Sequence record: NC_020851.1 | DNA length: 64,000 nucleotides | Direction: 5' to 3' (one strand) | The notes under the pieces: generated by a model | Told to the model about the DNA's origin: nothing | What the model saw: only the letters and a program-made list of their open reading frames with translations | The model's database searches: none | Made by a program: the position numbers and the translations under genes | In this document: in pieces, positions 3,796 through 34,774 of the stretch | Layout of the letters: every line of letters begins with the position of its first letter | Numbering within the stretch: the stretch's first letter is position 1

Positions 3796-3929
3796 TTGGT
3801 GAATTCCTGATGACTTAACTACAATACACGATTTTGAGGTCTGTGCCGAAACCTTGTGCCACTTTGTCCGACTGTCCACTCGCGGCTGACCTGAGTATCA
3901 TTTAGTGGGGAGATTGCCTCCCCTAAGTG

Positions 3930-4752: not shown

Positions 4753-5025
4753 TTACTTAGTGAGAACTAATTCTTTGATCTCCAACTCATGCTCTACGCC
4801 AAACCTATCATTCAACTCATCATAAGTAGTTTTTTTGTATTCCCACTTCTTTGCAAGTTCTAAAAGACGAGGCATTTCCTTAACCTTCATCTCTTCAAGG
4901 TAATCCTCCGCTTCATTTAACGTAAGGAAAGTCTTAGTATGGTCTGAATCCAACATAGGAATTTCAAAGCTTTCATAATCATCGCATTCATACTGGATTT
5001 CGAAAACTAGATAAACTGAAGTCAT
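4753..5025 (-). CDS. Small acidic early protein
   Basis: 90-aa ORF between A repeats. Confidence 0.65.
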   Translation of the reverse strand: MTSVYLVFEIQYECDDYESFEIPMLDSDHTKTFLTLNEAEDYLEEMKVKEMPRLLELAKKWEYKKTTYDELNDRFGVEHELEIKELVLTK

Positions 5026-5140
5026 TGTTGTTCCTTTGGTAAATTCCTTTGACTCTTTAATAATACACTATTTTGAGGTCTGTGCCGTGACCTTGTGCCA
5101 CTTTGTCCAACTGTCTACTCGCGGCTGACCTGAGTGTTAC

Positions 5141-5290
5141 TTAGTAGTCTAATTTGCCGTTAATGTAACTTTCTACATCAAACTTCTTATCATCTTCTCC
5201 CTCTTCCTTATATTCAATCACATCATAAATCTCACCGGGCATATCATTAATCTCAGAGAAAATGTCAGTGTCGAAAGTGTCGTAATCCAT
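5141..5290 (-). CDS. Very acidic small early protein (49 aa)
   Basis: Manual translation MDYDTFDTDIFSEINDMPGEIYDVIEYKEEGEDDKKFDVESYINGKLDY. Confidence 0.7.
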   Translation of the reverse strand: MDYDTFDTDIFSEINDMPGEIYDVIEYKEEGEDDKKFDVESYINGKLDY

Positions 5291-5331
5291 TTTAAAAAAG
5301 TGTTAGTTAGTGAGAGTTGAGTAAGTGTTAC

Positions 5332-5529
5332 TTATGAATTCATATCAGTCCAAGTTTCTTCACCATAGCAATCGATAATCTCCCCTTTCAACTCATCCAT
5401 ATTGTAATCTTTGAGATTCTGTTCAATACTTTCAACCGCAAAAGTAATCAACGAATCCATATCCATTCCTTCTACAATCATCTCTGCATAAGCATTCTTC
5501 AGTTGATCGATTTGATTGAGAGTCATCAT
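5332..5529 (-). CDS. Small acidic early protein
   Basis: 65-aa ORF between B repeats. Confidence 0.7.
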   Translation of the reverse strand: MMTLNQIDQLKNAYAEMIVEGMDMDSLITFAVESIEQNLKDYNMDELKGEIIDCYGEETWTDMNS

Positions 5530-5571
5530 TTGAAAAAAAGTGTTAGTTAGTGTGAGTTGAGTAAGTGTTAC

Positions 5572-5721
5572 TTAAGCAAGAAGATTATCAATCACACGTT
5601 CAACATCTGCCGAAACTTCAATGCCTTGAGATTCACAATAATCAAGACACATTTGAAGGTCAGGTTGCATCTCCTCTACGAAATCATAGAGGGTTTCAAA
5701 TACAGTTTGAGAACAAGTCAT
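5572..5721 (-). CDS. Small acidic early protein (49 aa)
   Basis: Manual translation MTCSQTVFETLYDFVEEMQPDLQMCLDYCESQGIEVSADVERVIDNLLA, between B repeats. Confidence 0.7.
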   Translation of the reverse strand: MTCSQTVFETLYDFVEEMQPDLQMCLDYCESQGIEVSADVERVIDNLLA

Positions 5722-5755
5722 AATGTTAGTTAGTGAGTGAATGAGTAAGGGTTAC

Positions 5756-5995
5756 TTAGTCTATAAGTTCTTTCATCATTTCGTTTACTTCTATTCCGTT
5801 GATATTAACATCGTCCCACTTACAACTGTCTGGTGTTTCTTTACTTCCGGCATCGTGAATCATACTTACCAGATGTCCATAAGTTCCACCATCCCTTGCA
5901 ACATCACATGCCAGTTCATACAAACCAGGATCATTTCCGATCCAGAGAGCAACATTCCAGGTCTCCCAATTTGTCCAACCGTTGTAACCTTGCAT
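5756..5995 (-). CDS. Phage protein with YNGWTNWETWNV motif
   Basis: The N-terminal YNGW-T-N-x-E-T-W motif is common in small phage early proteins. Confidence 0.7.
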   Translation of the reverse strand: MQGYNGWTNWETWNVALWIGNDPGLYELACDVARDGGTYGHLVSMIHDAGSKETPDSCKWDDVNINGIEVNEMMKELID

Positions 5996-6087
5996 TTGGT
6001 GAATTCCTGATGACTTAACTACAATACACGATTTTGAGGTCTGTGCTCATTTATTGTGCCACTAATACTTTTGGCACATAGTATCAC

Positions 6088-6306
6088 TTACACAGTACGA
6101 ATCGTGATACTACACATTAACTCATGAGCAACATCGATAGAGTCATCTTCTCTCACAATTGGAAGATTAGTATCAACAAACTCCGAAGCAAGATCCATCA
6201 TTAACTCATGCATTCTTTCATCTCCTGCTGCAAACTCAGCAAACTCTTCAGAGAATCCGGATGCTAACCTACGAATTGCTTCGTCATGTACATTGAGAAC
6301 GGTCAT
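6088..6306 (-). CDS. Small acidic early protein
   Basis: 72-aa ORF after a B repeat. Confidence 0.65.
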   Translation of the reverse strand: MTVLNVHDEAIRRLASGFSEEFAEFAAGDERMHELMMDLASEFVDTNLPIVREDDSIDVAHELMCSITIRTV

Positions 6307-6346
6307 TTTGAAAAAAAGTGTTAGTTAGTGAACGAATGAATGAATG

Positions 6347-6511
6347 TTACTTAGCAGGGAAATTCTTACACACAGCATCACATAAAATCTTCACAAGTTC
6401 TTCATCATAATTGACATCATACTGTGCAAAGTAATCAGTGATGATACAATCAATGTCTTCCATCAATTGTTCACGACTAGTTAACATGTCAAGTGTGTCG
6501 TTGTTAATCAT
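6347..6511 (-). CDS. Small cyanophage early protein (54 aa)
   Basis: Manual translation MINNDTLDMLTSREQLMEDIDCIITDYFAQYDVNYDEELVKILCDAVCKNFPAK. Confidence 0.7.
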   Translation of the reverse strand: MINNDTLDMLTSREQLMEDIDCIITDYFAQYDVNYDEELVKILCDAVCKNFPAK

Positions 6512-6572
6512 TTTTAGGGTGAATTCCTGATGACTTAACTACAATACATGATTTTAGGGTCATGTGCTCATA

Positions 6573-6673
6573 TAGTGTGCCACTTCCCCGACTGTCACAC
6601 TCATAAGGTCTCTCTATGGGTCTTATAAGGTCTTCTAATGCCCTCTCGTGACAGTCGGGGAAGTGGCACACTA
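6573..6673. repeat. Perfect 26-bp inverted repeat with a 49-bp spacer
   Basis: TAGTGTGCCACTTCCCCGACTGTCAC (6573-6598) and GTGACAGTCGGGGAAGTGGCACACTA (6648-6673) are exact reverse complements. Confidence 0.95.
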
Positions 6674-6823
6674 ATACACGTCTACGGTCTCTCTGATGCT
6701 AATATCAACATTCTCGTCACCTTCCAGTCCTAAGATATCATTCCAATCAATATCTTTAAGATTTAAATCATCATAACACTCGATGTCTAATGTAACACTT
6801 ATGATGCGTTTGTGTGCGTACAT
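6671..6823 (-). CDS. Small acidic protein (50 aa)
   Basis: Manual translation MYAHKRIISVTLDIECYDDLNLKDIDWNDILGLEGDENVDISIRETVDVY. Confidence 0.6.
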   Translation of the reverse strand: MYAHKRIISVTLDIECYDDLNLKDIDWNDILGLEGDENVDISIRETVDVY

Positions 6824-6899
6824 GTGTATCTCGTATGATGTGTGTTATAATGTGTTATGTGTACACATATCTCGTAATGTATACATGTATCTCGTAACG

Positions 6900-7103
6900 T
6901 TATGCGTAATGTTTATACGCAAGCTCTACGTAATCACATGTATCTCGTGCGTACTCATCATCTATCTCGTATGTATCCTGGGTGTTATGTGTATCTCGTA
7001 GTGTATATGTATCTCGTGCATAATGCTCACACATCTCGTCTTTATAATACGTATAAGACTCGTTGTTATAATGATACTGTAACTCGTGGTCTTCGTAATA
7101 CAT
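6900..7103 (-). CDS. Tyr/Asp-rich low-complexity small protein
   Basis: 67-aa ORF in a region of repeated ATCTCGT motifs. Confidence 0.4.
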   Translation of the reverse strand: MYYEDHELQYHYNNESYTYYKDEMCEHYARDTYTLRDTHNTQDTYEIDDEYARDTCDYVELAYKHYA

Positions 7104-7250
7104 GGGTCTCGTCGAGATTTGTATGTTACTTGTATATTATACAGACATCTCGCACGTATGTCAAGTATGATCTCGTGCGGCATTCATAAGCATTATTTAT
7201 AAGTCTCGACGAGAAAAATGTGTGGGTCTCAGAGTTTTTATGCGGGGTGC

Positions 7251-7279
7251 TTGACAAAACTGCCGTCTTGTGGTAGAGT
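7251..7279 (+). promoter_or_regulatory. Near-consensus sigma70 promoter pointing into a non-coding repeat region
   Basis: TTGACA (7251)-17 bp-TAGAGT (7274) with extended -10 TG; opposite in orientation to the flanking genes. Confidence 0.7.
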
Positions 7280-7301
7280 GCGGGTAAAGGTCACAAGTCT
7301 C

Positions 7302-7405
7302 AGAAGGTTTATAAGAGTATTAGAGAAGGTTTATAAGAGTATTAGAGAAGGTTTATAAGAGTATTAGAGAAGGTTTATAAGAGTATTAGAGAAGGTTTAT
7401 AAGAG
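7302..7405 (+). repeat. Tandem 22-bp repeat, 4.7 copies (iteron-like)
   Basis: Unit AGAAGGTTTATAAGAGTATTAG begins at 7302, 7324, 7346, 7368 and 7390 (partial). Confidence 0.95.
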
Positions 7406-7406
7406 G

Positions 7407-7457
7407 TTTTCCACACATAAAAGACACTTATCCACAGAAATAACCCACTTATCCACA
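7407..7457 (+). promoter_or_regulatory. Three DnaA-box consensus sites in 21-bp phase
   Basis: TTTTCCACA 7407, TTATCCACA 7428 and TTATCCACA 7449 all match TTWTNCACA; an AT-rich tract follows at 7475-7520. Confidence 0.7.
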
Positions 7458-7592
7458 GACTTGTTGGAAAACAGTTTTATATTTATAATCATATTTAAAA
7501 CCTATTTTTTAACTCATAATGTAACAATCGATACAAAATACATAGTTTAGTCATGTAATCAATAGTATAAGGCATCTAGGAACACTTATGGG

Positions 7593-7784
7593 TTAGTTGA
7601 CATGAATAGTTAGAGTTTTACCATCTGATGACAAACCTATGGAGCAGTGAGTGAGTTCCGGTCTAATCTCTCTATGACTAACAGTAGCACCCTTGTGATA
7701 ATGGGACGAATGATCAACAACTAACTCTTCAACACTTGATAGTATTGTTGCATAGATTTCATTTGAATCAATTATGTACTTCAT
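7593..7784 (-). CDS. Hypothetical protein
   Basis: 63-aa ORF overlapping the stop codon of the upstream gene. Confidence 0.5.
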   Translation of the reverse strand: MKYIIDSNEIYATILSSVEELVVDHSSHYHKGATVSHREIRPELTHCSIGLSSDGKTLTIHVN

Positions 7785-8470
7785 TTTTTATCACCAAATA
7801 GTTTGTTCATATAATCAAGCACATCATCATTAACAGTATCATTAATAGATGCATCTACTACATCATCAATAGCATTACCTGTCAATACACTCTTAGTTGC
7901 AGAAGCAGTAATTAGAAATGCCTTAAGTTTATCCTTCGTCTTATCTTCTTTCTTCTTTCTTTTTATGGCAACGATTTCATCAATACGACTTTGAATCTTT
8001 TCATTCAGAGTAGAATTAAATCCTACCTTTGACATATCATGCAATCTGAGGAATTCCTCAGATAAAGTTTCTCTCAGAAAGATTGGTGAATTGATATAAC
8101 AATCAATCAGATCATCAGGAAGATGAACATTCAAATATAATTTTGGATGACATGTGTTTTCATCATTCATATATAAAAACCCAGAACGATGAGTATCATA
8201 AATGGCACGAAGGATTTCTTCATCATCAGATGTTTTTGCCCATTCACCAATTATTGTTCTATCTTCTTTCCAAACATAAAGCAAACAAATAGGTCCTCGC
8301 CTCTTAGAATACTGTGCTTTCCATTCAGGAAGAGAATGTTCTTTATAAATTTCTGACGTAATTGTTGCTTCTTTAATAACATACAGAATTAATTCTTTTT
8401 CTGTTGCAAATAATGGGTCTGGGTCTGGAACTGAATTAGATTCGGTCTGATGAGAAAAGAAGTTAAACAT
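7781..8470 (-). CDS. Hypothetical protein (about 229 aa)
   Basis: Long ORF; probable start MFNFFSH at 8470, because the ORF-track start lies inside the promoter motif TATAAGGCATCTATGTGCCC. Confidence 0.6.
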   Translation of the reverse strand: MFNFFSHQTESNSVPDPDPLFATEKELILYVIKEATITSEIYKEHSLPEWKAQYSKRRGPICLLYVWKEDRTIIGEWAKTSDDEEILRAIYDTHRSGFLYMNDENTCHPKLYLNVHLPDDLIDCYINSPIFLRETLSEEFLRLHDMSKVGFNSTLNEKIQSRIDEIVAIKRKKKEDKTKDKLKAFLITASATKSVLTGNAIDDVVDASINDTVNDDVLDYMNKLFGDKK

Positions 8471-34600: not shown

Positions 34601-34774
34601 CTACTGAGCTTCGTTATTGTCGTCAGTATGTATTCTTATTAGTTCATCATCTGCAGGCATCATGACTGCTGCCTTACCATCTTCTCTTACAATACCTATG
34701 GTTTCACCGTTTTCAACTCTCTCCATAAGGTCATCAAAATTGTCTTCCCATTCTTTCAGGGTAAAAACTTCCAT
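34601..34774 (-). CDS. Phd/YefM antitoxin-like protein (57 aa)
   Basis: Manual translation MEVFTLKEWEDNFDDLMERVENGETIGIVREDGKAAVMMPADD..., matching the Phd pattern (..F..L...V..GE.I.I.R.GK..AV.MP). Confidence 0.7.
   Translation of the reverse strand: MEVFTLKEWEDNFDDLMERVENGETIGIVREDGKAAVMMPADDELIRIHTDDNNEAQ

Follow-up and report, generated by a model that had tools for sequence, protein, structure and literature searches.

A phased DnaA-box module of phage S-SKS1 and other T4-like cyanomyophages as a candidate replication start

Host-Type DnaA Boxes in a Gene-Free Gap of S-SKS1

The window analyzed here, a stretch of 64,000 nucleotides, matches with 100% identity the last 64 kb of the genome of Synechococcus phage S-SKS1 (NC_020851, 208,007 bp, host WH7803), and its positions equal those of the record minus 144,007. 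Within a gap of 489 bp devoid of annotated genes (7104–7592), whose flanking genes all lie on the minus strand, it harbors a compact module composed of a predicted sigma70-type promoter opposing these genes (hereafter P_right), tandem 22-bp repeats, three evenly spaced DnaA boxes, a degenerate inverted box, and an A/T-rich tract. A previous sequence-only reading had described the gap, its opposing promoter, and the same series of parts as a replicon-style origin, and we recovered each of them. This anatomy is unique in the genome, and boxes, phasing, promoter, and A/T-rich motif are conserved in relatives. As judged from these comparisons, the promoter, the phased boxes, and the A/T-rich tract form a real, selected unit, which represents the first concrete candidate for a replication start in T4-like cyanophages. 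With a confidence slightly short of even, we read the site as an early, transcription-activated origin that would recruit the DnaA protein of the host.

Box 1 (7407–7415, plus strand) reads TTTTCCACA, which is the cyanobacterial DnaA-box consensus without any mismatch (PMC4674748), and the same motif is given for marine Synechococcus and Prochlorococcus in a DoriC-based table (PMC8287927). Boxes 2 (7428–7436) and 3 (7449–7457), also on the plus strand, both read TTATCCACA, box 3 being TTTTCCACA in some relatives. The three boxes lie exactly 21 bp apart, with 12 bp between them. They are followed on the minus strand by the inverted box (7463–7471, GTTGGAAAA), with two mismatches to TGTGGAAAA; a perfect TGTGGAAAA is found in L148, L172, S-PM2, and the L147-type relatives, whereas in the S-SKS1 lineage the inverted box is a relic whose nucleotide positions vary. 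S-SKS1 shows no enrichment of single boxes, as nine exact TTWTCCACA matches occur in 208 kb against 7.5 expected, and region 7407–7457 comprises the sole cluster of three or more boxes in the 208-kb genome. Likewise, both exact TTATCCACA copies of the window sit at this locus.

Box 3 is followed by GACTTGTTGG rather than by a GC spacer of the host type. The A/T-rich tract (7466–7530, without strand assignment) has 80% A+T and is a candidate unwinding element that falls within the least stable 0.04–0.1% of the genome's 40–60-bp windows. At 7490–7513 it holds the motif CATATTTAAAACCTATTTTTTAAC, which is recognizable in distant relatives, with related motifs in S-SM2, L121, L144, L147, L148, and Bellamy. 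Seven consecutive NTN triplets were found on the box strand, starting 17 nt after box 3 and thereby just beyond the 16 bp from a box within which three or more DnaA-trios (3'-NAN-5') are expected to begin in the bacterial scheme; at 80% A+T, such a run arises fairly often by chance.

Among the 80 genome matches listed for phased TTTTCCACA triples, about 51 are cyanobacterial, and several of these adjoin dnaA. From 18 DnaA proteins encoded at loci with such triples we built hidden Markov models (HMMs) of the full-length protein and of domain IV, and neither produced a match below E = 0.6, whether in S-SKS1 translated in all six frames or among the open reading frames (ORFs) flanking the modules. 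Because the boxes carry the cyanobacterial consensus, phased triples are mostly cyanobacterial, and no phage DnaA emerged from the HMM search, host DnaA would be the sole known candidate reader of the boxes, and that it binds them is likely.

Selection and Homing Endonuclease Insertions in Close Relatives

Close relatives were recovered from IMG/VR and metagenomes with the neighboring 240-aa protein and then with a 21-nt anchor upstream of P_right, which resulted in 60 loci representing 36 distinct variants. All three boxes are kept in 19 of these 36, in the order TTTT, TTAT, and TT(A/T)T, with a spacing of 21 + 21 bp and a few cases of 22 + 21 or 42 + 21 bp. Across 14 distinct close variants, none of the 27 box columns varies, as compared with 5 of 24 columns in the spacers (p = 0.018) and 19 of 75 downstream (p = 0.003). 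The lone box change, observed in a second haplotype, is an A to T at degenerate position 3. This pattern of substitution indicates that the boxes are under purifying selection. The sequence-only reading had named a lack of conservation of boxes and phasing in relatives among the outcomes that would refute it; both are in fact conserved, in these 19 close variants as well as in distant cyanomyophages.

The same collection revealed repeated insertions behind P_right. Five close variants conserve box 1 only, followed by a cassette with an HNH endonuclease; another five have no boxes and show a GIY-YIG cassette joined inside a repeat; and two have all three boxes followed by a different GIY-YIG gene. 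Behind the promoter, relatives thus carry no fewer than three unrelated genes for homing endonucleases (one HNH_3 and two of GIY-YIG type), all of them in its orientation (L007:6765–7802, L018:6145–6963, L006:7535–8074, and L095:4908–5918), and these inserts replace the A/T-rich tract, SWZG_00192, and, in some variants, the boxes. At the junction, identity amounts to 86% over the gap but to only 45% in the right-hand gene. On the evidence of these alignments, the locus is a recurrent landing site for homing endonucleases and a mosaic junction, which bears on how cyanomyophage genomes shuffle.

The Module in Distant Cyanomyophages

A pattern scan of IMG/VR returned phased DnaA-box triples in at least 117 contigs, so phage-borne DnaA-box arrays are common as a kind. 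The low-GC subset with TTTTCCACA boxes consists of T4-like cyanomyophage contigs, whose gp6 is 40–55% identical to that of S-SKS1 and whose array lies in a small-gene region adjoining gp25/gp6. In S-SKS1 itself, gp25/gp6 are about 9 kb away, and the module sits within an extended series of small genes of the early type. Across the distant contigs the recurring order of elements is promoter, AGATCACAAG, TTTATAAG repeats, two to three direct boxes, inverted box, and A/T-rich motif; in L095, L121, L144, L148, and L172 it takes the form of promoter, AAGATCACAAG, TTTATAAG-type repeats, three direct boxes at 21–22 bp, inverted box, and A/T-rich motif. L121, L148, and L172 additionally have TCTCGTCGAGA palindromes and a divergent leftward promoter in common with S-SKS1. 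Among isolates, S-SM2 has a module with two boxes and a degenerate inverted box, and S-PM2 conserves a rearranged one with two direct boxes and one perfect inverted box. RefSeq places many tRNA genes in the S-PM2 locus (L190, NC_006820, record ~17.4–19.4 kb), some of which overlap coding sequences and the DnaA-box cluster; as the stretch is repeat-rich and non-coding and ARAGORN detected no tRNA at locus positions 5000–7800, these tRNA coordinates look unreliable.

The signature TTGACA..TAnnnT..AAGATCACAA produced at least 120 matches in IMG/VR, against about 27 that we estimate by chance. From these matches, 102 modules were collected by the promoter and leader signature alone, and 38 of the 102 have exact boxes within 400 nt downstream, compared with a background of 0.01 per 400 nt. 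Of 25 spacings between direct boxes, 14 measure 20–22 bp and 8 measure 41–42 bp, and >>, ><, >><, and >>> are the arrangements commonly observed. Over all module loci, 101 of 110 boxes are of the TTTT type. In the modules without boxes, the same slot is occupied by other repeated or palindromic motifs, such as direct and inverted copies of TTCTCAATAA (loci L313, L321, L345, and L347) or ATTCGTATC palindromes (L324, L325, L331, and L335); a GGGTAGTATCC type was observed in L344, L350, L356, and Bellamy L191. These motifs suggest alternative DNA-binding factors. No neighboring gene was found to covary with the type of slot among the module loci, and the "DnaA-specific" ORF clusters probably represent, from their position, ORFs read through the box arrays. 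A broader form of our reading, held more tentatively than the reading of the S-SKS1 site itself, is that of a modular early origin, in which a fixed antisense promoter, leader, and A/T-rich opening site would be combined with an interchangeable recognition slot that contains DnaA boxes in about 40% of lineages.

Several relatives are rich in boxes, with 6–10 within about 500 bp in L178, L147, and L089. Such numbers invite the explanation that the boxes, multiplied by the phage copy number, might titrate host DnaA in the manner of datA, a DnaA titration locus, blocking host replication rounds and sparing nucleotides. The boxes are host-type and predicted to be of high affinity, the phage encodes no DnaA of its own, and an accessory takeover function would tolerate the loss of boxes seen in nature. 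Against this, three boxes constitute a small sink, titration has no need of a fixed early promoter, a conserved leader, and a conserved A/T-rich motif, and the modules without boxes retain all other parts. Furthermore, cyanomyophages degrade host DNA anyway. We therefore regard a DnaA sink as improbable.

Hypervariable Repeats and the Iteron Interpretation

The repeat zone of S-SKS1 (7302–7405, plus strand) comprises 4.7 tandem copies of the 22-bp unit AGAAGGTTTATAAGAGTATTAG, 100% identical to one another, and thus conforms to the description given in the sequence-only reading and to an iteron-like array of at least three direct repeats of 17–22 bp at helical phasing. A further copy of GTCTCAGAnnnTTTAT, the unit that also opens the repeat zone, is located upstream of the promoter (7226–7241, plus strand) inside an anchor sequence conserved in the 60 loci; together with the copy at 7297–7312, from which it is 71 bp distant and to which it is 81% identical (family D19), it brackets P_right.

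Among close variants, the perfect 22-bp array is restricted to S-SKS1 and one ocean contig. Elsewhere the zone is hypervariable, being built of ~11-bp units (GGTTTATAAGA, GTATTAGAGAA, CATAAGATCTGA, and others) that differ in number and order. Unit length among relatives is 11, 22, 33, or ~65 bp, the persistent part is the TTTATRAG core alone, and the number of cores differs widely: S-SM2 has a single degenerate copy, whereas the largest arrays (S-SKS1 and V28) contain five or six. The proposal that the repeats are an iteron set consequently did not hold: they are the expansion, in one lineage, of a variable TTTATAAG-type motif present in one to six copies. The consensus sequences of the Pho box, NtcA, LexA, IHF, and the T4 late promoter were compared by eye with the TTTATAAG repeat of S-SKS1, and none fits.

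These results bear directly on the possibility of a plasmid-style replicon, in which a phage Rep protein bound to the 22-bp iterons would open the A/T-rich tract together with DnaA, as in R6K gamma, P1 oriR, and RK2 oriV. The arrangement of S-SKS1 is suggestive, as the tandem repeats adjoin both DnaA boxes and A/T-rich tract and a repeat-core copy also lies upstream of the promoter, and iterons overlapping a promoter are typical of Rep autoregulation. However, the unit, length, and number of the repeats change among relatives, and the unit is nearly absent in S-SM2 and L144. The scan of ten neighboring proteins against Pfam and PHROGs detected no Rep family, and the 240-aa neighbor produced no match with E < 0.4 by PDB sequence, AlphaFold model (predicted local distance difference test, pLDDT, 65.7), or Foldseek. 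The S-SKS1 record annotation lists no initiator gene, and no neighbor covaries with slot type. Because no Rep was found and the iterons are not conserved, we consider such a replicon quite improbable, in agreement with the earlier remark that no cognate Rep gene is visible. Of the layout initially proposed, the promoter, phased boxes, and A/T-rich tract are supported as a conserved unit, and the iterons are not.

Promoters, Leader, and Transcriptional Control

P_right (7251–7279, plus strand) is a predicted early sigma70-type promoter, TTGACA-17-TAGAGT with a TG extension, which agrees with the consensus at 10 of 12 positions. It points into the repeats, boxes, and A/T-rich tract, against all neighboring genes, and no ORF follows it in S-SKS1. 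Its -35 hexamer is kept in all listed close variants except one, and the TGnTAnnnT pattern is kept in most of them while the inner -10 bases vary; equivalents were also found in distant cyanomyophages. The -35 element is TTGACA and not a MotA box, and MotA is absent from the S-SKS1 annotation. P_right would be read by host RNA polymerase, and we infer that it fires early.

The transcribed region is predicted to begin with the conserved sequence AGGTCACAAG-TCTCAG-AAGGTTTAT (7288–7312, plus strand), which in relatives mostly takes the form AAGATCACAAG...CACATTTATAAG, and the combination of promoter and AGRTCAC occurs once in the S-SKS1 genome. Of 100 shuffles, 99 fold better than the predicted transcript (z = +1.75), which makes a structured non-coding RNA unlikely, and Rfam searches of the window (E ≤ 1) and of 12 module loci (gathering score) yielded no credible family. 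An alternative without any DNA-level function would be a gene for a structured small RNA or a neutral remnant, for instance chance repeats or a fragment captured from a host origin. Conservation of the 5' end of the transcript, as in small-RNA seed regions, and the origin of perfect repeats by slippage would be compatible with this, but the weak folding, the missing Rfam family, and the wide conservation of boxes under purifying selection speak against it, as does the fact that the most conserved internal elements are DNA-binding-site motifs. We hold this alternative to be highly improbable. With such motifs inside the module and the repeat core on both sides of the promoter, a function at the DNA level is indicated.

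To the left of P_right, we identified additional elements that the sequence-only reading had not listed. A divergent promoter on the minus strand (P_left, 7136–7164) is a perfect sigma70-type match (TTGACA-17-TATAAT, 12/12 consensus positions), is conserved in relatives, and is predicted to drive a leftward operon of small genes starting with SWZG_00191 and SWZG_00190. The module is syntenic, with SWZG_00190 (phrog_12516) immediately on its left in 70 of ~108 loci. Two operator-like palindromes of the form TCTCGNCGAGA, TCTCG(T/A)CGAGA, bracket P_left and are the only two copies in the 208-kb genome: TCTCGTCGAGA at 7107–7117, in the 5' leader of P_left, and TCTCGACGAGA at 7204–7214, between the divergent promoters, neither with a strand assignment. 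One to nine copies were found at the equivalent place in relatives, and the palindromes look like operators of a dimeric regulator.

The position of P_right raises the possibility of a transcription-control element at which no replication starts and where DnaA, bound downstream of an antisense promoter, would regulate or block the passage of transcription. The reach of the early antisense transcript into the convergent genes would be set in this way, the two leftward operons would be insulated from read-through, and inserted endonuclease genes would be controlled; the binders of the alternative repeats would do likewise in other lineages, and the level of DnaA would couple early phage transcription to the replication state of the host. 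This explanation draws on the opposition of P_right to all its neighbors with no ORF behind it, on the three unrelated endonuclease genes inserted behind the promoter, on the interchangeable slot with its dispensable boxes, and on the L147 type, in which a second cluster of boxes is located between the divergent promoters. In most relatives, moreover, the module directly follows the terminator hairpin of the convergent operon. DnaA is a known regulator of transcription (PMC11317965). What this explanation leaves open is the deep conservation of a specific A/T-rich motif beside the boxes, and also the two-turn phasing with a closing inverted box, as in initiator arrays; in addition, alleles free of endonuclease are the majority and still keep the promoter. 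On balance, transcriptional control appears a possible but doubtful account of the module.

Comparison with Known Origins

DnaA-box arrays, origins made of a promoter and an unwinding element, and iteron origins are known kinds of elements. In T4, initiation is by the textbook independent of DnaA and primed by transcripts and recombination. The minimal oriF and oriG of T4, about 100 bp in size, comprise a promoter and an A+T-rich unwinding element. As in the cyanophage module, their promoter points into a downstream A+T-rich element; the transcript primes or opens the T4 origin and would do so in the module; S-SKS1 also has the replisome and loader genes in common with T4. In contrast, oriF and oriG have MotA-dependent middle promoters and the module a sigma70-type one, and whereas their minimal form is ~100 bp, the A/T-rich tract of the module lies ~180 bp past the predicted start, with host DnaA boxes in between.

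The resemblance extends to T4 oriE, an origin that requires an early promoter and contains direct repeats at even spacing. According to the T4 record, its primer RNA is antisense to gene 5, GTTGAAGGTAAT (12 nt) recurs every 24 bp, and segC and gene 6 come next. Features common to oriE and the module are an early-type promoter that, in oriE, needs no phage factor, an antisense transcript, predicted in the module, and evenly spaced direct repeats. Furthermore, oriE lies shortly upstream of baseplate gene 6 with the GIY-YIG gene segC beside it, a setting roughly mirrored by the module upstream of gp25/gp6, which in relatives has homing endonuclease genes at its side as well. Unlike the module, oriE lacks DnaA boxes, is associated with RepEA and RepEB, and is inside gene 5, whose gp5 beta-helix is encoded by the repeats; there is no sequence homology between the two. 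The role of the oriE iterons is unproven, and a comparison with R6K has been made for oriE in the literature.

R6K gamma, P1 oriR, and RK2 oriV resemble the module in presenting repeats with a period of ~22 bp, DnaA boxes, and an A/T-rich tract side by side. They differ from S-SKS1, a lytic T4-like genome with a replisome of its own, in which no Rep gene was found and the repeats are not conserved in unit or number. Cyanobacterial origins and arrays use the same box, TTTTCCACA, and direct arrays phased at 21–22 bp are common in cyanobacterial genomes, but the unwinding core of host oriC (S. elongatus, Prochlorococcus, and WH8102) combines a pair of abutting boxes with a GC spacer and DnaA-trios of the CTA type, none of which is seen in the module, and neither dnaN nor dnaA is near the module. 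Finally, other phage contigs with DnaA-box clusters also show phased triples; these are mostly of the TTATCCACAGG type, their proteins exhibit little or no similarity to those of S-SKS1, and the cyanomyophage module is distinguished from them by its own conserved promoter, leader, and A/T-rich motif.

A Candidate Early Origin That Would Recruit Host DnaA

As the module resembles T4 origins and adds host DnaA boxes to them, we propose an early origin driven by DnaA and transcription. Soon after infection, host DnaA would bind the phased boxes, which at 21 bp would lie on one face of the helix, and transcription from P_right would cross them. Melting driven by DnaA, the negative supercoils left behind RNA polymerase, and possibly an RNA–DNA hybrid would together open the A/T-rich tract. 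Phage machinery of the T4 type (gp32, gp59, gp41/gp61, and gp43) may assemble at the opened tract for a first round of replication, with recombination-dependent replication presumably taking over later.

A number of observations weigh against this proposal. In comparison with S. elongatus, Prochlorococcus, and WH8102 (DoriC-derived table, supplement of PMC8287927), the host-type unwinding arrangement is not seen here: there is neither a tandem box pair 0–3 bp apart nor a GC-rich spacer, and the NTN triplets fall just outside the 16-bp range for DnaA-trios. In addition, 16–22 further regions of the genome are no more stable than the A/T-rich tract. The R-loop-favoring G>C bias of the leader averages +0.54 in the S-SKS1 lineage and is negative in L095, L144, S-SM2, and L147, so that, being confined to this lineage, it is ruled out as a trait of the family. 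The boxes themselves are, by comparison of natural variants, dispensable, since V21 shows a clean deletion of the boxes with the A/T-rich tract retained, some close variants have an endonuclease cassette in their place, and about 60% of the signature-collected modules, as well as that of the isolate Bellamy, have no boxes. In P-SSM2, S-SSM7, and S-T4, no module was found within 9 kb of the syntenic marker gene. The module immediately follows a convergent operon, a location that would be just as appropriate for an antisense or insulator function. The GC-skew check suggested by the sequence-only reading gave no support: across the whole 208-kb genome, GC and AT skew show no inflection at the module, GC skew being uniformly negative. 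Nearly all S-SKS1 genes lie on the minus strand, and skew is uninformative because it tracks this near-uniform gene orientation genome-wide. To our knowledge, no T4-like phage uses DnaA, and we found no report of one in the literature.

Likewise, our searches on DnaA boxes in cyanophages or cyanomyoviruses and on the AGATCACAA motif retrieved nothing relevant. The sole statement found on where replication starts in a cyanomyophage concerns Syn9, for which a single theta origin was predicted from skew. The combination of these elements as a conserved module of lytic T4-like cyanomyophages is not described in the literature searched, and it would surprise specialists in T4-type replication. If the site is an origin, use of the host initiator would have its first demonstrated case among T4-like phages in S-SKS1, meaning that a lytic phage with a complete T4-type replisome still relies on host DnaA for its first replication round. 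The onset of phage DNA synthesis would then be tied to the state of host DnaA (cell cycle, light, and energy), which could help explain the dependence of cyanophage DNA synthesis on the physiological state of the host. If the site is instead an antisense or insulator element or a sink, it would still be an undescribed way in which abundant ocean viruses read or manipulate the initiator of their host. In either case, a conserved array with the host consensus offers a precise and mutable site in culturable systems (S-SKS1 or S-PM2 on WH7803, and S-SM2).

Genomic Setting and Additional Observations

The T4-like nature attributed to this DNA by the sequence-only reading is borne out by the annotated gp23, gp43, gp41, gp61, gp32, gp59, UvsX, UvsY, gp55, and gp33, next to which the record lists gp20, tail sheath, tail tube, gp45, gp44/62, and gp46/47. 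The annotation thus contains the full set of T4-type replisome and loader genes, and the taxonomy given in the record is Llyrvirus. The annotation is incomplete elsewhere: two long stretches (record 118,975–126,337 and 133,285–140,284) lack annotated genes and skip locus tags, yet the long ORFs 133423–138138 and 138159–140282 match baseplate-region proteins of other cyanomyophages.

A larger gap (6824–7592) with an array of ATCTCGT binding sites (motifs at 6820–7180) was considered and ruled out, since SWZG_00191 (6900–7103) is a real gene. In 11 distinct relatives, all indels in it have lengths divisible by three, and codon position 3 accounts for 21 of 28 substitutions; this purifying selection identifies the ATCTCGT motifs as a coding repeat, which encodes the ARDT peptide repeat of the protein. 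The product is a small acidic protein with ARDT(Y/H) repeats whose number differs among relatives, and it has no Pfam or PHROG family. Further along the window, SWZG_00248 (~34601–34774; record 178608–178781) is annotated as a Phd-like antitoxin gene, although the phage is lytic and the record names no evident toxin partner next to it.

To the left of SWZG_00191, a perfect 26-bp inverted repeat (6573–6598 and 6648–6673) encloses a 49-nt loop (DNA fold z = -8.9), and the loop contains two copies of CTYATAAGGTCT 22 bp apart. A stretch of ~65 nt beside it (6518–6584) recurs with 91–97% identity in two other intergenic spaces (5998–6063 and 3798–3835), and several copies are present in relatives also. 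On the gene strand, each copy presents a stem-loop and then a conserved stretch up to the next start codon, an organization that resembles the "promoter-early stem-loop" cassettes, which are mobile elements in T4-type phages.

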